This document shows positions 446 through 29,110 of a stretch of 31,772 nt of DNA, one piece after another (the first letter of the stretch is position 1; every line of letters begins with the position of its first letter). The notes beneath the pieces were generated by a model. That model had not been told where the DNA came from. It ran no database searches and saw only the letters and a list, made by a program, of their open reading frames with translations. The position numbers and the translations under genes are program-made. The stretch is from Macrostomum lignano (taxonomy: Eukaryota). Where the stretch lies: NCBI GenBank assembly GCA_002269645.1, contig NIVC01004911.1, positions 1 to 31,772 on the forward strand. Reading direction: 5' to 3'.

Positions 446-546
446 ACTTCAATACGTTTTTAACTCTACACAATGTAACTTCAAAGAATATCAGCAGTAG
501 TGGCAAGAATAATCGGTCAAGATCGGTGCGCACAGTCTGCTCTCAC

Positions 547-1734
547 CTGCACGTAGGGACACCCGCTCAGGTTAATTGTTCTCAGCTTGTTCCGATCCAG
601 CACGAGCTCCCGCAGTTGACCTGACTGCAATCCGTCCGTCGTTTGCAGCTCGTTGCCCTGCATAAACAGAGTGCGCAGCGACGGCAGCCGGTGCAGCTGT
701 AACGACGCGGCGTCCTTGATCCCATTGTAGGCGAGGTGCAGCACCTCCAGCGTGGGCAGAAGGCTGCCAGTGCCCGAGGCCAGAGACTCGATGTGGTTGT
801 GGTTCAGGCAGAGAACGCGAAGAGACGGCAAGCTGGCGATTCCGTTGAGCGTCGTCAACGAGTTGGACTCGAGATTGACGCTGCGCAGGTTGATGAAGCG
901 ATCGTGGAGGTTGAGCTCAATAGTCCGCAGGTTGCTGCGGGACATGTCCAGCTCTTTGAGATCGTAGAATCGGTCGTGACCGAACTTTTCAATCAGCAGG
1001 TCAGTCGTCAGCTTGCCGCCCAGCAGTTGAACGGCGCTCTGAACCTCGTCCTGCTCAACTGGGACGCCGTCGAGTGAGCACAGCGATCGCAGGTGGTAGA
1101 TGACAGTCGTCCGATAGTTGTGCGAGTTGGACGCGATGGGGTTCTCGCCGAGATCGAGAATCAGGAGCGACTGCAAAGATTTGAGGTAGAAGAGCTCGCG
1201 AGTGTCCTGGATGCGGTTCAGGCCGATGAAGAGCTGGGCCAGGCTGCTGTGCTTGTCAATGCCGGCCAGGCTGGACACGTGGTTGTTCAACAGGTTGAGG
1301 CTGGTCAGGTTGGGCGCCAGCAGCCCCGTGCCAATCTGTTCGATGCAGTTATGCGCCAAGTTCAGGTGGCGCAGGGCCGGATATGTGCCTGTAGGCATTG
1401 TGCCAATCAGATTGTGCGTTGCCAGCAGTTCCTCCAGCTGCGAGCAGGAGTCAAGGCCTTCAATGCGGGACACGTGATTGTAGTTGATTGACAGCCAGCG
1501 CAGGTTGAAGCAGCGCTCCAGACCGGTTATTCGAGTCAGGTTGAGTCCGTCCAGGTTGAGCATGCTCACCTGGGCGAACAGCTCAGGCGGCTGCACTGGC
1601 AAGAATTGGGTCGGCGACTCCAAACTGATGTATTTGGGCGTGCCGGTCACGTGAGCAGCGTAGCTGAGAAGGTTGAACCGGCCTGGCATTGAGGCTGTGA
1701 CTTCCTCCTCTGTGACCGGCTGGCCATCCAGTAC
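547..1734 (-). CDS. LRRC9: LRRC9 exon 4, SDS22-like LRR array
   Basis: ttgtgcag|GTA acceptor at 1734 and CAG|gtgaga donor at 547; 396 codons of LxxLxLxxN repeats with an LRRcap (YRTTVIYHLRSLCSLDG). Confidence 0.9.
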
Positions 1735-1989
1735 CTGCACAATTTGTGAAATGAGACTATTGTGTTAGGATATGAGCAAGGCAACGCAAATTTGCATAAT
1801 AGGCATATCTGGTCTTCTTTACTATCTGTGCTGAGACCCTGACTAAGATAAAATATTTAAATTGCATTCGAGCAAACACTAAGGCACGGGGTTGACTGAG
1901 ATTTTTGCGTGGACCCAAGTCCCCTTTTATAAATGTTTTTATGCCTGAAATTCAAGTCTGATGACGCATAGAACTCCATGTAAACAAAC

Positions 1990-2986
1990 CTTCAGCTCCT
2001 TCAGCTTATTGATGACGATGACTCTGTAAGCCACCTTGTACCGATGCCAGGGATTTCCCTCCAGACTGAGGCCAGTCAGCATTGCCGTGTGCTTCCGCAT
2101 GTGGCTGAGCTCGTTTCTCAGGCAGGTGAGTCGATTAAACGCCAGCCGGAGACTTCTGAGCTTCCCGACGTGCTTGAGACCGTCGATGGAGACGATTCGG
2201 TTCCAGGACACGTCGATCTCTTCAACTGGTAGTCCGGCCAGGTCCTCCAGACCGGTGAGCAGATTTGAACGGGCGTTCAGCGTCCGCAGAGAGTGCAGCG
2301 AGTCGAGGCCTCGGAGCCGGGTGAGGCCGAGCGCCTCGATCTGCAGCTCGGCCAGGTTCTCGTAGGGTGCCGTCACTGGCGGCGCGGGCTCGAGGTCAGG
2401 CGTGGGCGCAGCCGGGCCACCGCCGCACACGACCTGGTGAAACGGATTGCTGGTCCGCCTGCCCGAGTACTCCAGCTCCACCAGGAACTCCGGAACAAGG
2501 CAGGCGTTGTCTAGAAAGTACCAGGTGCACTGGCGGCCGAGGCATTCGCACGAGTAGCCTTCGCTGGTGGAGTCGGCCATGCGGAACACGGCGGTCAGTT
2601 GTCGCTTCGGCTCTTCATCGCCTGACTCCTGCGACAGTTGCTCGCCTCCGTTTGCAGCCGCAATGATCGTCTCGACCTCCTCCAGTGATGCGACCGCCTG
2701 CACCGACTTGCCGATGTAGGCCTTCACCAGCAGCAGCCGCGACCGGCCGACGCCAGTTTCCTTTGCGCAGTCGCAAAGTGTCGCCCCATCGGCGATGTTG
2801 ACGCTGTTGGACAGCACCGCCGGCCGGCTGGTGACGCCGCGCTCTAGGCAGTCCAGCAGACTGTCGTTGTCGCCTTCGGGCCAACGGTAGAACAGATAGT
2901 CCTGGTACTTCTTTGCCACCATGTCCAGAGAGCAGTAGGTGCTCCGGGCAAGGGTTTGCAGACGCGGCAGACACGCCTCCTGGTAC
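1990..2986 (-). CDS. LRRC9: LRRC9 exon 3 (ART/PARP-like region plus LRRs)
   Basis: ccatccag|G acceptor (phase 2) and AAG|gtttgt donor; YLFY...LLLVKAYIG...VPEFLVELEY followed by LRRs, colinear with LRRC9 as I recall it. Confidence 0.88.
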
Positions 2987-3010
2987 CTGGATGGCGGTGT
3001 GGTTGATAAG

Positions 3011-3165
3011 GACTGACTGACTGACTAACTGACTGACTGACTGACTGACTGACTGACTGACTGACTTTCTCACTGACTTTCTCACTGACTGACTGACTGA
3101 CTGACTGTCTCACTGACTGACTGACTGACTGACTGACTGTCTCACTCACTGACTGACTGTCTCAC
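3011..3165. repeat. (ACTG)n microsatellite with interspersed copies of the splice donor
   Basis: Read directly; fills LRRC9 intron 2987-3165. Confidence 0.95.
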
Positions 3166-3476
3166 CTGGCCGCCAGCACTGGCAGGTGCAATCGGTGCAC
3201 TTTGTCCACCTTGCAGGCGGTGACGCCGCTCTGCCGATGCTGTGACGAGCAGAACCTCGAGCTGACAATGTCGGCCACCAGTTTGTGCCAGTCTTGCCCG
3301 GTGCCCAGCTCGCAGCGAACGCTGCCGCCGCTCTCCAACTCCATGTTGAGCAGGTTCCAGGCCAGCTCTCTGTCCATTTCGATCTTCTTCAATGCCTCGG
3401 TGAAGAAGCCACGCGTTGTTGGCCAGGCGGCCTCCAGCTGGCTGAAGTTTCCTGCTCCAGTTTCGACGAGGCGAGC
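3166..3476 (-). CDS. LRRC9: LRRC9 exon 2
   Basis: tttcttcaacag|GCT acceptor and AG|gtgaga donor; LLNMELESGG...DW...SSRF matches the LRRC9 LLIELET..N...DW...SRF segment. Confidence 0.85.
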
Positions 3477-3512
3477 CTGTTGAAGAAATGGTCGGTTAAA
3501 TTTAGGTATCTC

Positions 3513-4672
3513 AGATCCTTGGTCCCAGATCCTTGGTCCCAGATCCTTGGTCCCAGATCCTTGGTCCCAGATCCTTGGTCCCAGATCCTTGATCCCAGAT
3601 CCTAAATCCCAGATCCTAGATCCCAGATCCCAGATCCTAGATCACAGATCTTAGATCCCAGATCCTTGATCCCAGATACTTGATCCCAGATCCTTGATCC
3701 CAGATCCTTGATCCCAGATCCTTGATCCCAGATCCTTGATCCCAGATCCTTGATCCCAGATCCTTGATCCCAGATCCTTGATCCCAGATCCTTGATCCCA
3801 GATCCTTGATCCCAGATCCTTGATCCCAGATCCTTGATCCCAGATCCTTGATCCCAGATCCTTGATCCCAGATCCTTGATCCCAGATCCTTGATCCCAGA
3901 TCCTTGATCCCAGATCCTTGATCCCAGATCCTTGATCCCAGATCCTTGATCCCAGATCCTTGATCCCAGATCCTTGATCCCAGATCCTTGATCCCAGATC
4001 CTTGATCCCAGATCCTTGATCCCAGATCCTTGATCCCAGATCCTTGATCCCAGATCCTTGATCCCAGATCATTGGTCCCAGATTCTAGATCCCAGATCCT
4101 TGATCCCAGATTTGTGATCCCAGATCCTTGATCCCAGATTTGTGATCCCAGATCATTGATCCCATATTTGTGATCCCAGATTTTTTATCACAGATCCTTG
4201 ATCCCACATCCTAGATCCCAGATCCTAGATCCCAGATCTTAGATCCCAGATCCTTGATCCCAGATCCTTGATCCCAGATCCTTGATCCCAGATCATTGGT
4301 CCCAGATTCTTGATCCCAGATTTGTGATCCCGGATCCTTGATCCTAGATTTGTGATCCCAGATCCTTGATCCCAGATTTTTTATCACAGATCCTTGATCC
4401 TAGATTTGTGATCCCAGATCCTTGATCCCAGATTTTTTATCACAGATCCTTGATCACACATCCTTGATGCCACATCCTTGATCCCACATCCTTGATCCCA
4501 CATCCTTGATCCCAGGTTTGTGATCCGATCCTTGATTCCAGATCCCTGATCCCACATCCTTGATCCCACATCCTTGATCCCAGATCATTGGTCCCAGATC
4601 CTTGATCCCACATCCTTGATCCCAGATCTCTGATCCCACATCCTTGATCCCACTTCCTTGATACCACATCCT
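3513..4672. repeat. 14-bp minisatellite (CCTTGATCCCAGAT)n, about 80 units
   Basis: Read directly; fills LRRC9 intron 3477-4680 and explains the DQGSGIKDLGSRIW pseudo-ORFs. Confidence 0.97.
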
Positions 4673-4680
4673 CAACCCAC

Positions 4681-5526
4681 CTTGTGGTACTCGGCCAGGC
4701 CAATTGTCACCCTCCGGCCGAGACAAGCGCTGGTCCGCTCAAGAACCTCGGCTCGCATGGCGTAGTACATTCGTTTCTTCAATACTGTGCTGTCCGCCAG
4801 CTCAAACGGCAGCCGGCTTGAGCAGTCGAACGTGTCCAGGTTGAGCAGCCGGGGCATGTGGTACAGGATGAAGATGGAGTAGTTGGATAGCTGGGTGACT
4901 GGGCAGGGTCGGTACTGCGGGTCGCGAAGGCAGAACCGGCGCAAAGACGGCAGAGCCGCCAGCGACACAACATCGCGAATGGAGGCCAGCGGGTTGCCCG
5001 ACAGGTTCAAGCTCTCCAGGCTGGCGTTCTCCGTGAGGCAGCCGGCCACTTCCGTGATGAAGTTCTGCGCCAAATTGAGCTCCTTCAGGTTGGACAGTTT
5101 CTCGAAGCCAGCGAGTTCGCGCAGCTGATTGTTGGCCAGCCACAGAACCTCCAGCGAGCCGCCGAGATGGTCGAGGCCGCCGTTTATCGTCGCTATGGAG
5201 TTGCTATGCAAGTACAGCTTCTTGAGTCGGTGATTTGCAGACAGGCCAGAGATTTGAGTCAGCCTGCAGTCTGAGACCCAGAGCACCTCCAGCAGGGGGC
5301 AGCTGTCCAGGGTGCTGATCTCGGTCAGGCTCTGCTCCACAATGATGAGCTCGCGGAGATTGGGGAACAGGCTGAGGTGAGCAAAACGGGGATAGCCGCC
5401 GAAGAAAATCTCCAAGGTGGCGGTCTCGGCGGCCTCCGCCTGCAGTTTTTCCCGGTCCTCCGGCAGGCCATTCGACGAGCAGATCTCGCGCAGAAGGTCC
5501 GCGTCGCTCACTGCGATCTCGGAAAT
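4681..5526 (-). CDS. LRRC9: LRRC9 first visible coding exon, N-terminal LRRs; true start codon unresolved
   Basis: LREICSSNGL...LEIFFGGYPR...LSLFPNL...DPQY...KKRMYYAMR is the LRRC9 N-terminus; AAG|gtgggt donor at 4681. The ORF-track start at 5556 is TTG, not ATG; 5526 is a candidate cag| acceptor. Confidence 0.85.
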
Positions 5527-5587
5527 CTGCGGCGTTTTATTTTTCGAAGAGCTCAATCGAAAGAATGTGTGGCCTTGCAGTTTCCAT

Positions 5588-10261: not shown

Positions 10262-10742
10262 ACCGGTATCCTACTGCCCAGTACCGGTATCTGATCGTCC
10301 AGTAACGGTATCTTATAGTCATCACCGGTATCTCTAGTCCATCACCGGTATTTTACAGTCCATCACCGGTATCTTATAGTCCATCACCGGTATCTTATAT
10401 TCATCACCGGTATATTTAGTCCATCACCGGTATCTTATAGTCATCACCGGTATCTCTAGTCCATCACCGGTATTTTAAAGTCCATCACCGGTATCTTATA
10501 GTCCATCACCGGTATCTTATAGTCCATCACCGTTATCTTATAGTCCATCACCGGTATCTTATAGTCATCACCGGTATCTTATAGTCTATCACCGTTATCT
10601 TATAGTCCATCACCGGTATCTTATAGTCATCACCGGTATCTTATAGTCATCACCGGTATCTTATAGTCCATCACCGTTATCCTATAGTCCATCACCGGTA
10701 TCTTATAGTCCATCACCGGTATCTTATAGTCATCACCGGTAT
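10262..10742. repeat. 20-21-bp minisatellite (CACCGGTATCTTATAGTCCAT)n, about 23 units
   Basis: Read directly; GPAA1 intron 4, starts right after SINE copy 1. Confidence 0.95.
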
Positions 10743-10749
10743 CATACAT

Positions 10750-11532: not shown

Positions 11533-11866
11533 TTCAGTGAGTCATTCGTCGCTTCAGTGAGTCATGTCTAGGTTCAATGGGTCATACTCCTAGGTACATT
11601 CAACGAGTCATGAGTAGATTCAGTGAGTCATGGATAGATTCAGTGCGTCATGGGTAGATTCAGTGAGTCATGAGTAGATTCAGTGAGTCATGGCTAGAGT
11701 AGATTCAGTGAGTCATGAGTAGATTCAGTGAGTCATGGCTAGAGTAGATTCAGTGAGTCGTGAGTAGATTCAGTGAGTCATGAGTAGATTCAGTGAGTCA
11801 TGGCTAGAGTAGATTCAGTGAGTCATGAGTAGATTCAGTGAGTCATGAGTAGATTCAGTGAGTCAT
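11533..11866. repeat. 20/25-bp minisatellite (GAGTAGATTCAGTGAGTCAT +/- GGCTA)
   Basis: Read directly; GPAA1 intron 5. Confidence 0.95.
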
Positions 11867-11897
11867 GTTCGCTACTCTTTGAACCGCCACCCCACAG

Positions 11898-12389: not shown

Positions 12390-12396
12390 GTGGGGT

Positions 12397-12686
12397 GTGG
12401 GGAATTTTCGGGCTGTGGGGAATTTATGGGATGTGGGGAATTTATGGGATGTGGGGAATTTATGGGATGTGGGGAATTTATGGGATGTGGGGAATTTTTG
12501 GAATGTGGGGAATTTATGGGGTGTGGGGAACTTATAGGATGTCGGGAATTTATGGGGTGTGGGGAATTTATGGGATGTGGGGAATCTATAGGGCGTGGGC
12601 AATTTATGGGGTGTGGGGAATTTATATAATCTAAGGAGTTTCTAAGTTGCAGGGAATTTTGTAAGGTGTGGGGTACTTTTTGAGGG
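12397..12686. repeat. 18-bp G-rich minisatellite (GTGGGGAATTTATGGGAT)n, about 13 units plus degenerate ones
   Basis: Read directly; starts 7 nt into GPAA1 intron 6. Confidence 0.95.
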
Positions 12687-12724
12687 TAAATAACTGCTCT
12701 GTAATATTTCTGGTAGTTCGGTAG

Positions 12725-13200
12725 ATCAATTAGTCAATTCGGTACATCAATTAGGCAGTTCAGTACATCAATTAGGCAGTTCGGTACATCAATTAGGCAG
12801 TTCGGTAGATCAATTAGGCAGTTCGGTACATCAATTAGGCAGTTCGGTACATCAATTAGGCAGTTCGATAGATCAATTAGGCAGTTCGGTACATTACTTA
12901 GGCAGTTCGGTACATCAATTAGGCAGTTCGGTACATCAATTAGGCAGTTCGGTACATCAATTAGGCAGTTCGGTACATTATTAGGCAGTTCGGTACATCA
13001 ATTAGGCAGTTCGGTAGATCAATTAGGCAGTTCGGTAGATCAATTAGGCAGTTCGGTAGATCAATTAGGCAGTTCGGTAGATCAATTAGGCAGTTCGGTA
13101 GATCAATTAGGCAGTTCGGTAGATCAATTAGGCAGTTCGGTAGATCAATTAGGCAGTTCGGTAGATCAATTAGGCAGTTCGGTAGATCAATTAGGCAGTT
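12725..13200. repeat. 21-bp minisatellite (CAATTAGGCAGTTCGGTAGAT/ACAT)n, about 22 units
   Basis: Read directly; 3' half of GPAA1 intron 6, ends just before the branch point and acceptor. Confidence 0.96.
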
Positions 13201-13228: not shown

Positions 13229-13759
13229 GCGATGGCCGCCGCCTTTCCGCTGATGTTCCCCAACATGATCGTCGCCTGCCACCCTGGCGCGCTCCGCCTC
13301 GCTGCCTGCCTGTCGCTGGGCCTCAGCCTTGGCGCGGTGTCGCTGGTGAACTTCGGCCTGGCCTTCCTCTCCGCCCTGCCCCTGGCGCCCGTCTGCTTGC
13401 TGGCTGCCGGGCCCGACAGACTGCCGGCAGTCCTTCGGTTCGGCATCGGCACCGTTGCCTTGGCGGCAGCTTCGCCAATCGGCCTGTTGCTAGGCGGTTG
13501 CTATGCCGCCGGCGGAGCCAGAAGCTTAGTGTCGGCGTGGACCTGCGCCGAGTACGGCGCTCTGCAGGGCTACGTTGAAGGCCAGCTGTTGGGCAGCTTC
13601 ACCTACCGGCTGAACTGCCTGATGCTGCTGCCCTGCTGGCTGCTGGCCTGGTGCCAGCTGTTCGCCCGCGCCTGGCCGCGTCCGGCCGCCCCCGCAGCCG
13701 CCGCCGCTGCTGCTGAGGAGACTTCGACCGAGAGTGAGGAGCCAGCCAAAGATAAATAA
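13229..13759 (+). CDS. GPAA1: GPAA1 exon 7 (C-terminal TM helices, stop)
   Basis: tcctgcag|GCG; SLVNFGLAF motif and hydrophobic helices; TAA at 13757-13759. The seven exons total 1899 nt = 632 aa. Confidence 0.88.
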   Translation, partial: AMAAAFPLMFPNMIVACHPGALRLAACLSLGLSLGAVSLVNFGLAFLSALPLAPVCLLAAGPDRLPAVLRFGIGTVALAAASPIGLLLGGCYAAGGARSLVSAWTCAEYGALQGYVEGQLLGSFTYRLNCLMLLPCWLLAWCQLFARAWPRPAAPAAAAAAAEETSTESEEPAKDK

Positions 13760-17667: not shown

Positions 17668-18287
17668 ATGGACAAGAATGTCAGTCAGCAAAAGTCTTCG
17701 ATCGGCGAGATCAGCTGCCGAAGACATGGAATTCGTCAGATACTTCTGGAAGAAATTCCATCGGAAAACTGCACGCCGCCAACCGAATCCGAGCTGAGGC
17801 TTTATGCTCTACACGAGTTGGGCATCGATCTTGACCAGGAGCCCGAGTTGAGAAGCCTGGCCCTTGCTGGACTGACATCCCCTCTGCCTCCAGGCTGGCA
17901 GGCTGTTCAACTGCTTTTACCAGTTGACGAGGTTGGTAAAACGGCGGACCCGGAGCCAGGCTGGGTGCTCTATTACTTCAACAGCAGCAGCGGACAGTCC
18001 ACTTGGGAGCACCCGAGCAACGCCAGGTTCCGCCGTCGGGTCGCAAAGCAAAGGCGACGACTTGCTTCAGCCGAGACTGCAGCAGCGGCCGGAGCGACAA
18101 ACGCCGAAGCCGAGTTGCCTTGTCGGGTGGCCCAGTATTTTCGACGTCGTGGACTTTCCATTGAAACTTCTACCAGTCACAATGGTGACGATCGGACGAT
18201 CCACAAGGAGGCTTCAGTGAAGTGTGGATATGACAAACGAGCTCGCAGCCAGCGACCTTCTGTTAAACCGCAAAATTTATCAGCGAG
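17668..18287 (+). CDS. CEP164-like N-terminal WW-domain protein, exon 1
   Basis: QILLEE...PTESELRLYALHELGIDLDQEPEL..LA..GL.SPLPPGW...YYFN...GQSTWEHP is the CEP164-type N-terminal module; AG|gtaagc donor. Confidence 0.85.
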
Positions 18288-18445
18288 GTAAGCAAAAAAC
18301 CAAAGCTAAAAGATCCACAAGATCCGTTTCTGAATATAAATGATACGAGCGTAGCAATCGTAGTAGAGGATGAGCTGACGAACTTCTCAATGAAACAGAA
18401 CTAGGGACTTTTAATTTTACATCTACTTCCCATTTTTCCCCGCAG

Positions 18446-19775: not shown

Positions 19776-20133
19776 ATGGAGCAACTTCAGACAGCTTTGA
19801 AGGGCCGGCTGCAGCAGCTGAGCGGCCCGAAGTCGGTCGGGCCTTCCGGAGGCTGCGGTCACGTCAACATCGCCATGGAGGCCAGCGATGCATCGTCGGC
19901 CGCTTCCGACGCGGAAAGTACTGGCAACGATGACGATGACGACGGGGAGAAGCGCGATCGCCCCGCCAAAGACAGCCAAGCTGATGATGGGCAGCTGGGC
20001 GACTACCAGAAACACATGCCAGGTGATTTGGCAGACGTGCAGGACGACGCGGAAGAGTTAAGTGACGCTGACAATAGCAGCCTGTCAATCTCCGGATCGA
20101 TGGGCCCGTGGCGGATCGTTCGGGCTCTGCTAG
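19776..20133 (+). CDS. RNF217: RNF217-like RBR E3 ligase exon 1 (acidic, disordered N-terminus)
   Basis: ATG after an in-frame TGA; CTAG|gtatgc donor in phase 1, matching the next acceptor. The start is inferred. Confidence 0.65.
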
Positions 20134-20356
20134 GTATGCTCAGTGAATTATTTAAGTTTAAACTTCTTGGGGTTGGTCTATGAAGCGTGTCCTGTACAGC
20201 ATGATGCCGGGTCGTCAATAGACTCACAACGAGTTCTGTGCTTGGTTACCTTACCAACCGTCACAAAGTTTAATAGTGCATTTTTCAGACGCTTCTCAAG
20301 CTATCATAAAAATATTTTTCCAACCAAACGAATGCAGTCCAACATTTTATCTTTAG

Positions 20357-21318
20357 GCAGTCGGTTCTATGCTGACACTGCTGCGGATAACGACGACACA
20401 GAAGCTGCAGTAACAGCAGCGGCAGCCGCAGAAGCGGCTCAGAGGTTCACCGCCTGGTCCCGTCGCCTCTGCTGGCGACAGTTTCATCGCCTGCGGCACC
20501 GCCAAAATCGTCGGTTCGCCGGTTTCGAGTCCGGATTGCTCATAGATCTGCTGTGTGTCTCCGCTGTGGCCGACACGGCTGGCCAGCGAGACCGTCTGGC
20601 TGTCCTCAAGGCAGCCATTCAAGCGGATGTCAATTCCGATGACATTGGAAACGACGCTGAAACCGACGGCAGTGACCGTGCTGGCAGCGGCCGAATCTTT
20701 CATCTGTGCCTGCGCGCTGCACTGAACGATGTCGACTGCTGGCTGTCGTTGTGGACAACAGCTCTCGCTGATGAGTTGACAGCCCGACTGTCTCTGCCAG
20801 AGGGACTGGGAGTCCTGGCCATCGGTACCTGCGATCGAGTCTGTCTGGAGCCCGGACGACCACTGGCTTTGACTCCTTGCTGCCGCCAGCGGGTCTGCCT
20901 TGCATGCCTCGCTGACCATGCTCGCTCGCGCCTGCTGGAGGGCCGGCCGCAGCCGCCGCCGTGTCCGCTCTGCCCTGCCGAGGCCGTTTTCAGCGTTGCT
21001 CAGCTGCGCTTTCTGTTGGCCAACTGCTGCAGTGGTTACTATGGCGACAATGGTCCGATTTTTAACCGGCAGCTGCTGACGCTGCTTGATCGTCGGCTGG
21101 CAGACCAGGCGGTGGGCTCGGACAGCCGGACCTGCCCACACTGCGGCCTCCTGACGCCTCGACCACCACCAACGCCTTCGCAGCAGACGCAGCCCCCGAT
21201 GGGGGCCCTTCAACAGCAGCCAACTACTGGTGCCGAGTCGGTACCAAATCCTAGCGGTGAAGACACTGACGATGTCTCCACAGTTGCCTGCACAGTTGCC
21301 TGCCAGCGTTGCTTTCAG
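20357..21318 (+). CDS. RNF217: RNF217-like exon 2 (RING1 and start of IBR)
   Basis: atctttag|GC and CAG|gtaact; RVCLEPGRPLALTPCCRQRVCLACL...CPLC resembles the RNF217 RING1. Confidence 0.88.
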
Positions 21319-21479
21319 GTAACTGCATTGACCTTGTATACCAGCTCTGGAGTGCATTAGACTCACCAAGCCGTTGCACGACCAACAATAAAACCAATTT
21401 GGTTAGAATACTTTCCTGCATGTGCAACAACATATGCTCACCATCTTCATTTACAAACACACAATTACCAAATCCACAG

Positions 21480-22410
21480 GCCTGGTGTTTCGACTGTCAC
21501 GCTCCGCTCCACGCAGACCGCAGCTGCGCCAACTTCCGGCGCAGCCAGGACCAGCTGCTGGCGCAGTGGTGCAATGTAACCTATTCGGAGAACGGGCAGA
21601 TTCTACGACGAGCTCAACGCTGCCCCCGATGCTGCGTCCTGATTGAGAAGGACTCCGGCTGCAACCACGTCATCTGCTCGCGCTGCGGTTACGAATTCTG
21701 TTACGCCTGCAGAGCACCACACCACGCTGGTGACTGCGTTCCCCTGGACCTCGCCGAGGCAGCTGCCCAGCGTTCCCGGAACGCTCGACTCTGTCGACAG
21801 TTTCGCTTCTGGGAAGAGTTCAATCGTTCAGTGCCGCTAGCTCGGCCCTGCCCCGGCCCGTCTTGTCGCTACTTCGTTGCCCTGCCTGAGACGTCAGTGC
21901 GCCGAACTCCCTACGATTGGGAAACTCGCTGCGATCTGTGCCAGGTTGTTTTCTGCTACCTGTGCGGCACCCGGTCACACGTGGGCCTGCACTGCCCGAT
22001 TGTGAAACGCCGGTTAGAGGAAATGACCACCGAGATGGTCACCGATCCGGTCAGTGGACTGCAGCTGTCCCGATCCCGACAGTGTCCCCGATGTTCCGCC
22101 CTGGTTCCACTGCCGCTGGGCCTCGATCTGCATCACCAGCAGCAGCAACAGCAGCAGCAACAGCAGCTACAACCGGCGCAGCACCAGCAAGAAGAGTTCT
22201 GCAGCCGCTGTCTCGAGTGCTCGCACGTCTTCTGCTATCGCTGCGGCGAGAGCTGGTCGCCGGAGTTGAGCTGCTACTTGCTGATGTCTCAACAGCACGT
22301 CGAGTCAATCTTTGGCGGTCACACTGACGCGCTAAGCGTGTTCGGATGCCGCTACATCTACCAGAGGGACCGACCCGCGCTCAGGCGCACAATGCGAGGC
22401 CTTCGACTGC
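21480..22410 (+). CDS. RNF217: RNF217-like exon 3 (IBR end, RING2, second IBR, degenerate RING2)
   Basis: ccacag|GCC and C|gtgaga; WCFDCH..H, AQRCPRC..IEKDSGCNHVIC..C..FCY.C, then the RNF217-type tail GHTDALSVFGCRYIY..RP.LRR..RG. Confidence 0.9.
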
Positions 22411-22534
22411 GTGAGAGTTTTCACTGAGTCTAGGTGGATTTTTTAGTCGAAGATCAATCGTAAATTATCTGGTACAATCATTACCTGATTTATGACTCAT
22501 TGTCAACCGGATTTATTGCTCCCTCTCTTTTCAG

Positions 22535-22677
22535 TCGGCATTGTTCTGCTACTAATAATAGCCGTGGCCCTACTGTCGCCATTCATCGTGGCATTCCTCG
22601 CCATCGCTGTTATTGTCGTAGTTGTTGCCGGAATTTTCATCCTGGCCTACAAAATCTTCCGTCGATTGGGAAGATGA
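22535..22677 (+). CDS. RNF217: RNF217-like exon 4 (C-terminal transmembrane hairpin)
   Basis: ctctcttttcag| in phase 1; LGIVLLLIIAVALLSPFIVAFLAIAVIVVVVAGIFILAYKIFRRLGR*, as in membrane-anchored RNF217. Total about 797 aa. Confidence 0.85.
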
Positions 22678-23729: not shown

Positions 23730-24717
<988 letters not shown>

Positions 24718-26867: not shown

Positions 26868-27191
26868 CAATAATAATAATTGATTACGCCTGCCCCAATA
26901 GCCAGATGTAAAACCGACAGCTCGGCCGCAGCTAGGGCGCCGCAGCGCCGGATCTGAAGGCTGCGTACGGCTGTTCAGTCCAAGGACTGTGGGGTCGCCA
27001 CACACCCTCAATTACCCCAGCTAATGCTGGCACCCATTTTACAGCTGGGTGAACTGAAGCAATGCAGAATTAAGTGTCTTGCTCAAGTGTCTTGCTCAAA
27101 GTCACAATTGTTCCGAGTGGGTCCGAGAATCGAACCCCCGACCTTTCAGTCGTGGGTCCGACGCTCTAACCACTAGGCTACAACCCCCTGA
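26868..27191 (-). mobile_element. tRNA-derived SINE copy 3 (inverted relative to copy 2)
   Basis: Reverse complement ggggttgtagcctagtggttagagcgtcgg...ggttcgattctc (A and B boxes), same centre with a 13-bp internal duplication, (att)n tail. Confidence 0.85.
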
Positions 27192-27349
27192 GGCTGAAAC
27201 TCCCTGAGGCTACAACCCCCTGAGGCTACAACCCCCTGAGGCTACAACCCCCTGAGGCTACAACCCCCTGAGGCTACAACCCCCTGAGGCTACAACCCCC
27301 TGAGGTTACAACCCCCTGAGGCTACAACCCCCTGAGGCTACAACCCCCT
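27176..27349. repeat. 16-bp minisatellite (GGCTACAACCCCCTGA)n, about 11 units, derived from the SINE 5' end
   Basis: The first unit is the 5' terminus of SINE copy 3. Confidence 0.93.
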
Positions 27350-28006: not shown

Positions 28007-29110
28007 TCACGGACTCTGGCCCCGGGGCGCAGCGTTTGGGTTGGCAGCTTCGAGGCCTCGAGCTGATCTGCTGCTGCAGCCAAAGATCTCACGGAATGCC
28101 CGACGAAATTGACGGCTCTTCCACAGCAGAACAATCCAGTTCACCGACTGATTGAACAGCACAAGAACTCTTCCGATATCGACAATGCCCCAAAGCATCT
28201 TCTGGAAGGCAATTGAAGTCTCTGCGCCAATGATTGTCAGTGTCATGTTGATGAGGTTGCCCAAGACAGTTGGTATCGAGCAGACAAGCAGCACAGCGGA
28301 CAGGGCCACACAAATAATGGTGTTGGTGAGCTTGTTCTCACCTGATCCCGCTCGAATCTTAGCCTGCTCAGCCACAATATCCCTCATCTTGCAAATGAGG
28401 AATCCATTTGCTATCAAAATTATGAAGAACTCAACAGCCGCTGGGAGAACAAAAAGGCTTACATAGGTGTAAAACACCGTGTACTGCCAGCCTTCAAGGG
28501 AAAAGAAGCAAACAGTCGAGTCGCCCCAAATAACCCAACGAAACTGCGAGCCGTAGGGAGCAGCCAGAGCCGCGCTGAGGATGGCAGCAAAGAGACACAC
28601 CTTCATCGAAGTCTTCGCCGATACCGTCTGGAACTTCAACGGGAAATACACTGTCAGACACCTGTCAACCACCATCACAAGGAACAGAACGCTGGAGCTG
28701 ACGCTGAACAGTGCTTCAAGATGGCGCACAATGGTACAGGCAGCATCGGACGCGTTCACATGAAAGAAACCAATTCTAGCGCCGCTGACCCAAGGCAGAC
28801 CCTTGGCCAAGAACATCCACATTAATCCAACAATGAAGAGGTGGAAATTGTCAGAGATGGCGATGACACTGAAGTACACACCTTGACGCGTCAGAGGCCG
28901 CAGCTTCTTCAGGTAGATATAAGTAGTAAGACTGTTCCCGACGAATCCGCCTACCAAGAAGATTGGGAGAATGATTCCGGACAGGAATCCCAGCACGGTG
29001 TTGATCCTGCAGAACGACACAGCCTCGGGAGCATTGCTCCAGCAGTCGATAAACAGAAACTGCAGGCTATCGATGAACTTCCGCGGCTTGTCAATCGTAT
29101 CGTTCGACAT
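28007..29110 (-). CDS. Intronless class A (rhodopsin-like) GPCR, peptide-receptor-like orphan, 367 aa
   Basis: Seven hydrophobic segments: TM1 GN (GFVGN), TM2 AISD, TM3 VDRC...FPL, TM6 CSIP, TM7 SVNW, helix 8 FRRAF. First ATG (MSNDT, N-glycosylation sequon) is at 29110; the track start at 29209 is TTG. Confidence 0.9.
   Translation of the reverse strand: MSNDTIDKPRKFIDSLQFLFIDCWSNAPEAVSFCRINTVLGFLSGIILPIFLVGGFVGNSLTTYIYLKKLRPLTRQGVYFSVIAISDNFHLFIVGLMWMFLAKGLPWVSGARIGFFHVNASDAACTIVRHLEALFSVSSSVLFLVMVVDRCLTVYFPLKFQTVSAKTSMKVCLFAAILSAALAAPYGSQFRWVIWGDSTVCFFSLEGWQYTVFYTYVSLFVLPAAVEFFIILIANGFLICKMRDIVAEQAKIRAGSGENKLTNTIICVALSAVLLVCSIPTVLGNLINMTLTIIGAETSIAFQKMLWGIVDIGRVLVLFNQSVNWIVLLWKSRQFRRAFREIFGCSSRSARGLEAANPNAAPRGQSP

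Follow-up and report, generated by a model that had tools for sequence, protein, structure and literature searches.

The contig NIVC01004911.1 of Macrostomum lignano (assembly GCA_002269645.1), analyzed here over its whole length of 31,772 nucleotides (the window), carries on the + strand at 19776–22677 an RNF217-like RBR gene in which a second IBR–RING2 unit follows the first. The four exons of the gene, deduced from reading frames and splice signals (exon 1 tentatively), would yield a product of 797 amino acids (aa) with the domain order RING1–IBR1–RING2a–IBR2–RING2b–tail–hydrophobic anchor. Judging from sequence, we favor, with a probability of about 0.6, the reading that this is a functional gene with one active site, namely Cys501 of RING2a, and that the second unit is non-catalytic. 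Herein, RING1, IBR1, and RING2a are referred to as module a, and IBR2 together with RING2b as module b. The features on which the argument turns are the following.

20830–20973, + strand, aa 278–325: RING1 of the RNF217 type with an adjacent CC pair; invariant Cys columns kept
21133–21527, + strand, aa 379–456: IBR1, split by the intron 21319–21479; invariant ligands kept
21621–21737, + strand, aa 488–526: RING2a (Rcat), intact by its GCNH loop and Pfam match; codon of catalytic Cys501 at 21660–21662
21714–22307, + strand, aa 519–716: insert of 198 residues (IBR2 and RING2b), absent from every RNF217-like relative among the matches listed
21783–21830, + strand, aa 542–557: linker helix before IBR2
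21849–21995, + strand, aa 564–612: IBR2; Pfam IBR 35.3 bits, E 1.2e-8; eight ligands present
22083–22349, + strand, aa 642–730: RING2b, a Cys-less, Rcat-like domain; eight ligand columns kept; Pfam IBR 25.2 bits
22119–22130, + strand: G-L-D-L at the site where the family has its catalytic loop, G-C-[DN]-H, from the alignment; codon of Leu655 at 22122–22124
22131–22202, + strand, aa 658–681: Gln-rich insert of 24 residues, HHQ10LQPAQHQQEEFC; columns gapped in all 55 relatives
22308–22400, + strand, aa 717–747: RNF217-family tail IFGGH…SVFGCRYIY…RPALRRTMRG; invariant residues kept
22537–22650, + strand: hydrophobic anchor, in exon 4 after an intron

An intact, putatively catalytic core

Module a keeps every family-invariant residue of the RING1–IBR1–RING2a core, including Cys501. 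When aligned with 41 relatives, RING1 retains the invariant C278, C282, C294, C295, C300, C303, and C322, and the columns of C294, C295, C300, and C303 (the adjacent CC, then x4-C-x2-C) hold Cys in 39 of the 41. IBR1 has all of its invariant ligands as well (C379, C382, C435, C438, C443, C446, H451, and C456). The RING2a loop at 21657–21668 (GCNH, that is, G500-C501-N-H) fits the family pattern G-C-[DN]-H, and its Cys column is Cys in 41 of 41 relatives. The second zinc site of RING2a is closed by a compact motif of its own, C514-x2-C517-x3-HH-x3-C526, with all invariant Cys kept, and the domain reads FCYACRA where RING2b reads FCYRCGE. It scores 45.1 bits with Pfam IBR_1; the best PDB sequence match is the IBR–RING2 part of ARIH2 (E 1.4e-9). 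The RING1–IBR–RING2 triad of an RBR ligase is thus found in canonical order, with a canonically spaced catalytic Cys in RING2a, whereas RING2b has Leu655 instead.

Between its first and second zinc knuckles, IBR1 carries a loop of about 50 aa rich in Pro, Gln, and Thr (21145–21300, aa 383–434), approximately twice as long as in vertebrate RNF217. Also in IBR1, a perfect 12-bp tandem duplication (CACAGTTGCCTG, ×2.1, at 21279–21303) encodes TVAC-TVAC and gives the domain one extra Cys right before its third zinc ligand.

A second module with zinc ligands and a Cys-less RING2

In an alignment with 55 relatives, module b retains 16 of 16 zinc-ligand columns at an overall identity of about 28%. Eight of them belong to IBR2 (C564, C569, C591, C594, C599, C602, H607, and C612), with the motif CPGPSC…CDLC…FCYLC…H…C and a first knuckle of C-x4-C, against C-x2-C in the family. 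The other eight belong to RING2b (C642, C645, C684, C687, C692, C695, H721, and C730), with the motif CPRC…H-H-Q10…EEFCSRCLEC…FCYRC at 22083–22244. In the relatives, the catalytic loop has G in 55/55, C in 55/55, D in 43/55, and H in 46/55, whereas RING2b has Leu in both the Cys and the His columns. Having a predicted Rcat/IBR fold, eight ligands, and Leu for Cys, RING2b would qualify as a domain of the BRcat/IBR type. We infer that the retention of the ligands alongside the loss of both chemistry residues is the signature of selection on the fold and not on catalysis.

An earlier, model-made description of the locus (the first-pass annotation) had already claimed that RING2b lost its catalytic Cys. 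This part of the claim stands, as neither register offers a canonical Cys; the residue it named for the position, Glu, does not, since the alignment with 55 relatives places Leu655 there, and Glu (with Cys681 as the His) results from counting back from the C-terminal side. The motifs it quoted are all present where it placed them. The coordinate at which it let the ligase begin falls downstream of both RING1 (20830–20973) and the start of IBR1 (21133).

The Gln-rich insert of RING2b contains a run of ten Gln (22137–22166) and has an extra Cys, Cys681 (22200–22202), as its last residue. Together with the Pro/Gln/Thr-rich loop of IBR1, it indicates that low-complexity loops have been acquired in both IBR-fold modules. 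The ten Gln are encoded as (CAG)3 CAA (CAG)3 CAA (CAG)2. Short, interrupted CAG tracts are not a type known for ready length change. The proposal that CAG length would tune the domain therefore finds no footing, as the tract is broken by CAA, holds no pure CAG run longer than three, and lacks the long uninterrupted stretch that characterizes unstable repeats.

Could RING2b still be catalytic through Cys681 (F-C-S-R-C), giving the ligase two active sites or a relay? We consider this very unlikely. Cys681 does sit in the loop just before ligand C684 and occupies the position of the catalytic-loop His in the C-terminal-side register. However, the catalytic Cys lies 4 residues before the next ligand and 9–10 past the C-x2-C knuckle in 55 of 55 relatives, and the same spacing is seen in solved RBR structures, whereas the corresponding values for Cys681 are 2 and 35. 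Moreover, the family loop is still recognizable as G-L-D-L, with Cys and His both replaced.

Statistical and structural support

With Pfam IBR (PF01485), the 797-aa protein gives four matching stretches (E 2.7e-18), versus two in each of the M. lignano paralogues P0003 and P0004. For the scores listed above, IBR2 and RING2b were each scanned alone, and the curated cut-off of this profile is 24.3 bits. When the 198 codons of the insert were shuffled 20000 times at matched composition, the frame remained open in only 80 cases (0.4%). Because of the four Pfam stretches and the rarity with which shuffled inserts remain open, we regard the motifs as lying beyond chance.

AlphaFold2, run on module b plus the tail with a 56-sequence alignment, returned a moderately confident model whose mean predicted local distance difference test (pLDDT) score was 77.7, with 81–94 for IBR2, 87–88 for the RING2b core, around 60 for the Gln-rich insert, and 88–92 for the tail. 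When the model of module b was compared with PDB by Foldseek, the top matches (E up to about 0.1) were all RBR ligases, namely ARIH2, HOIP, ARIH1, parkin, and the HOIL-1 IBR–RING2 fragment. Their TM-scores are low, as would be expected of an arrangement like beads on a string. A sequence search of PDB with module b alone gave no significant match.

An RNF217-type ligase with an uncommon architecture

An exhaustive HMMER search with the exon-3 product against 1.84 billion cluster representatives yielded 1716 matches at E ≤ 0.001, the best 150 of which were realigned to the full model and compared in architecture. Apart from the gene's own fragment, the top matches are RNF217, among them entries of this name from Latimeria, Xenopus, and Lethenteron and, from Ptychodera, RNF217-like; the closest relatives among the matches listed are two M. 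lignano gene groups with the standard architecture. Common to the RNF217 family and the gene are the CC pair of RING1, the IBR motif WCF.CH, the G-C-[DN]-H loop, the tail, and a hydrophobic C-terminus. These likenesses support the assignment of the predicted product to the RNF217-type RBR ligases, in line with the first-pass annotation, which had likewise named RNF217; its relatives carry that name, and the RING1 pair, tail, and anchor are conserved.

In the tail, each of the 56 sequences aligned has the same G, H, S, G, C, R, and R. Here, the tail directly adjoins RING2b and not the catalytic RING2a, and it supplies the family-invariant His and Cys. In the anchor, about 40 hydrophobic residues follow one another without interruption (aa 750–789), Kyte–Doolittle means over 19 residues reach 3.4, and basic residues flank the stretch on either side; the relatives align across it too. 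Such a segment is consistent with a hairpin or two helices.

In 91 of the 91 tail-bearing RNF217-like relatives among the 150 matches listed, the tail (717 onward) comes soon after the match to RING2 (query 431–518), typically about 8 residues further on. Since hardly anything separates RING2 from the tail in these relatives, aa 519–716 form an insert peculiar to this gene, which thus departs from the single RBR module with a tail close behind the catalytic RING2 that typifies RNF217. The architecture is uncommon, which supports the first-pass annotation: no RNF217-like relative among the 150 matches listed contains the insert.

Further searches point the same way. In the exhaustive HMMER search, no five-domain relative appeared above the single-module matches, where one would have scored higher. 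A word-index search of a 5.8-billion-protein index with module b plus tail, polyGln removed, retrieved only the overlapping fragment P0002, and a scan of metagenome contigs with module b retrieved no relative. A word-index protein search with the product from RING1 to its end found one weak plant RBR only, polyGln and hydrophobic words having probably swamped the query. Among the sequences searched, the predicted five-domain architecture is confined to one gene in one genome; it is lineage-specific and not common.

Origin of the two modules

The single IBR–RING2 of P0003 is collinear with both modules. By tblastn it matches module a at 21483–21710 (E 2.5e-18) and module b, with the tail, at 21924–22400 (E 5.6e-13); by blastp the E values for modules a and b are 2.4e-30 and 2.8e-18. 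Between the two modules themselves, an alignment (28% identity, E 4e-5) extends from the last part of the IBR through the linker into the first part of RING2, and RING2b, which keeps FCYRCGE, is collinear with RING2 plus tail in both P0003 and vertebrate RNF217. Because P0003 is collinear with both modules and these align mutually, we propose an internal tandem duplication of the IBR–RING2 unit, and the sequence fits an origin of module b in this way, within the gene. The first-pass annotation had taken RING2b for the ancestral copy. This is reasonable insofar as RING2b is contiguous with the tail that supplies the invariant His and Cys, but the copies of a tandem duplication are equally old. 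A duplication artefact of the assembly was considered and ruled out, as the modules share only about 28% aa identity.

Alternatively, IBR2–RING2b might be foreign, having reached the gene by fusion from another RBR family. The first knuckle of IBR2, C-x4-C, has a spacing typical of Ariadne-like IBRs and differs from the C-x2-C of RNF217, and IBR2 scores nearly the same on RNF217 and non-RNF217 profiles (23.9 vs 25.3 bits). Nonetheless, we find a fusion highly improbable: RING2b leads without a break, and in the family's order, into the RNF217-specific tail and anchor, FCYRCGE is kept, P0003 is the best match of RING2b (40.4 bits), and the linker before IBR2 aligns with the pre-IBR linker of RNF217, two extra knuckle residues being a small change.

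Gene model

The exons of the proposed model are as follows.

19776–20133, + strand: exon 1 (tentative), ATG and acidic, low-complexity N-terminus; placed by splice logic
20357–21318, + strand: exon 2, N-terminal region, RING1, and first part of IBR1; open frame to the donor CAG/GTAACT
21480–22410, + strand: exon 3, end of IBR1, RING2a, IBR2, RING2b, and tail; acceptor CCACAG/G, donor CTGC/GTGAGA
22535–22677, + strand: exon 4, hydrophobic anchor and stop (TGA at 22675–22677); acceptor CTCTTTTCAG/T keeps the frame

All three introns are of the GT–AG type and keep the frame. Exon 3 runs for 310 uninterrupted codons and has an AT content of 0.38, versus 0.59–0.63 in the introns. For the junction of exons 1 and 2, the sole in-frame pair consists of a good donor, CTAG/GTATGC, and the pyrimidine-rich acceptor TTTTATCTTTAG/G at 20357. 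The junction of 21318 with 21480 is confirmed by the UniRef fragment P0152, which crosses the IBR1 intron exactly (…CFQ/AWC…). The five zinc domains lie in one reading frame, as first proposed, with RING2a, IBR2, RING2b, and the tail in a single exon. An unrecognized intron was ruled out as an explanation of the Gln-rich insert, which has exon-like composition and no good donor or acceptor.

Public annotation of the gene consists of two M. lignano UniRef fragments only. The longer one, A0A1I8FXZ3 (197 aa), is identical to the window product over its whole length and reads through the junction of 21318 with 21480, and the shorter one, A0A1I8FYR1 (P0002; 171 aa), is identical save for a skipped segment of 26 residues. 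A0A1I8FYR1 joins …TTGAES to AWCFDCH, with an alternative donor GAGTCG/GTACCA at 21239/21240, and the skipped residues include two IBR1 zinc ligands; the skip reflects an alternative isoform that was predicted, or else an error in the gene model. The two fragments alike begin with QAVGSD and end with ARPCPG (about 21857, inside IBR2), an end point that is not a splice donor. Exact-product look-ups returned no record for P0002, the exon-3 open reading frame (ORF), or the neighboring G protein-coupled receptor ORF.

These fragments raise the question of whether the model is wrong, with transcripts that splice out part of 21714–22307 or end early and thus encode a single-module or truncated RNF217. 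The common stop of the fragments just within IBR2 would suit such transcripts, as would the predicted use of an alternative donor in P0002. We nevertheless deem this quite unlikely, given that RING2a, module b, and the tail share one exon, that the fragments do not end at a donor, and that joining RING2a to the tail without module b would not give a family-like sequence. The sole in-frame GT…AG candidate is weak as well (22049/22218, donor GTCAGT, AT 0.38), and its use would halve RING2b.

Points against a functional gene

Some findings weigh against a functional gene with a folded, non-catalytic module b. The first knuckle of RING1 is C-D-R-V-C, that is, C-x3-C (20830–20844, aa 278–282), where 39 of 41 relatives have C-x2-C. 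Cys681 lies two residues ahead of a zinc ligand, which makes residual non-canonical chemistry conceivable. The alignment given to AlphaFold2 was made up of RNF217 relatives and already supplied the homology; the predicted fold supports the sequence argument but depends on it in part. The protein, metagenome, and exact-product collections searched contain no full-length protein, transcript, or orthologue with module b. Finally, published work describes M. lignano as a recent polyploid with many redundant paralogues, which makes a decaying copy plausible.

Critically speaking, the gene could then be a redundant RNF217 paralogue in decay within a neopolyploid genome, weakly expressed or not expressed, with module b a functionless relic. 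The presence of at least two other M. lignano RNF217-like gene groups with standard architecture (P0003 and P0004) speaks for this, as do the position of the gene as the most divergent copy (35% identity to P0003 over RING1–RING2a), the Pro/Gln-rich inserts in IBR1 and RING2b, the 12-bp microduplication, and the fragmentary public annotation with its 171 and 197 aa. On the other hand, the reading frame is open through all four exons, the splice sites are canonical GT–AG, and the 16 ligands of module b and all invariants of module a are kept at about 28–35% identity, as expected from selection on the fold and not from neutral decay. We thus hold decay to be unlikely.

Proposed mechanism and significance

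According to the established RBR mechanism, RING1 recruits E2~ubiquitin, ubiquitin passes to the Rcat Cys, and from there it is discharged onto the substrate (PMC3940038, PMC7458406); mammalian RNF217 has been reported to target ferroportin (PMC8295296). If the gene is functional with a single active site, as we favor, RING1 would bind E2~ubiquitin and the ubiquitin would be handed to Cys501 of RING2a and then to lysines of membrane-associated substrates. Placed between the active Rcat and the anchor, IBR2 and RING2b would be zinc domains of a BRcat-like kind, folded and non-catalytic. As a spacer, module b would lengthen the stretch from the active domain to the membrane anchor by some 200 residues relative to every other RNF217, and it may add a protein- or ubiquitin-binding or regulatory surface. 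The allosteric or ubiquitin-binding role that the first-pass annotation suggested for RING2b is hypothetical.

One might go further and see in the gene a snapshot of how the IBR (BRcat) originated, in which an Rcat was duplicated and one copy, having become Cys-less, was kept folded and recruited as a regulatory surface (e.g., a ubiquitin-binding or auto-inhibitory platform between active site and membrane). We consider this extended scenario unlikely; were it true, this would be the first RBR from nature in which a pseudo-domain derived from an Rcat follows the active Rcat. If the gene proves to be expressed and conserved, it would provide a natural case of an Rcat turning into a BRcat-like pseudo-domain, with its ligands kept and its chemistry lost, and would bear on the origin of the IBR and on the distance that may separate active site and bilayer in a membrane-anchored RBR. 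Since M. lignano is amenable to transgenesis and RNA interference, the question is testable. Until expression and conservation are shown, the wider importance is limited, as the case concerns one fast-evolving paralogue in a recently polyploid genome.

The surrounding window

The window is dense in satellite arrays, located at 3508–4672, 23732–24717, 12715–13200, 10262–10743, 11594–11867, 12391–12625, 27175–27349, and 3011–3159. Their units include a 14-bp unit (×84), (TATC)×246, a 21-bp unit (×23), 62/82-bp units, 18- and 20-bp units, a 16-bp unit, and (GACT)×37, and several of the satellites yield long spurious ORFs, such as "IYLS" and "IWDQGSGIKDLGSR" repeats.

Other coding stretches are found on both strands. 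On the − strand, a single-exon ORF at 28007–29110 (367 aa from its first ATG) matches the rhodopsin-family seven-transmembrane receptors (Pfam 7tm_1, E 4.9e-10), and at 517–5556 leucine-rich repeats (LRR_4, LRR_8, LRR_9) abound in three large ORFs or exons, which probably belong to one or two multi-exon genes of this repeat type. On the + strand, an ORF at 13232–13756, adjoining satellites, matches the C-terminal part of Gaa1, a component of the glycosylphosphatidylinositol transamidase (PF04114, E 5.5e-12), and an exon at 17668–18288, 1.5 kb upstream of the ligase gene, has a weak WW-domain match. For this last exon, a word-index search found as sole relative a product of 303 aa with 59% identity, located on a Logan contig of 1084 nt (run SRR28338163), and no M. 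lignano annotation; this stretch of the genome therefore seems poorly represented in public protein sets.

Comparison with known systems

The closest known system is RNF217 (IBRDC1), the animal transmembrane RBR, which in M. lignano itself includes Mlig029351 (P0003) and Mlig030936 (P0004). The gene resembles it in the CC pair of RING1, the C-x2-C knuckle and WCF.CH of the IBR, the G-C-[DN]-H of RING2, the tail FG.H…S.FGC…RP.LRR.VRG, and the long hydrophobic anchor. It differs in the 198 residues, IBR2 plus a Cys-less RING2b, that stand between the catalytic RING2 and the tail, in having four instead of two Pfam IBR stretches, and in that the second zinc site of RING2a is closed by a short motif of its own and not by the His and Cys of the tail.

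In RNF144A/B and RNF19A/B, the other membrane-anchored RBR ligases, a transmembrane segment at the C-terminus likewise comes after the RBR core (PMC7458406). They share this layout with the gene but have a single RBR module, other tails, and no pseudo-Rcat. RNF144A activity reportedly depends on self-association via the transmembrane segment (Ho et al. 2015).

RBR ligases are usually described as one RING1–IBR–RING2 unit. More than one IBR/RING2 per polypeptide is also predicted for some multi-RBR proteins, such as Ariadne-like arrays in Caenorhabditis brenneri and an RSL1-like double in Bidens, which may be fused gene models of tandem genes. In these, however, the whole RING1–IBR–RING2 unit is repeated and the Cys of G-C-x-[HFY] is kept; none is RNF217-like, and there is no Cys-less copy among the copies examined. 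Among the RBR ligases described, none known to us has a second, Cys-less RING2 downstream of an active one.

Finally, the BRcat has been defined as a domain with the Rcat fold that lacks the catalytic Cys and activity (Spratt, Walden & Shaw 2014, PMC3940038). Although RING2b would fit this definition, it differs from a BRcat in being recognizable, by its G-x-D remnant, FCYRCGE, and the ligands from the tail, as a former Rcat of the RNF217 type, and in its position after the active Rcat instead of between RING1 and Rcat.

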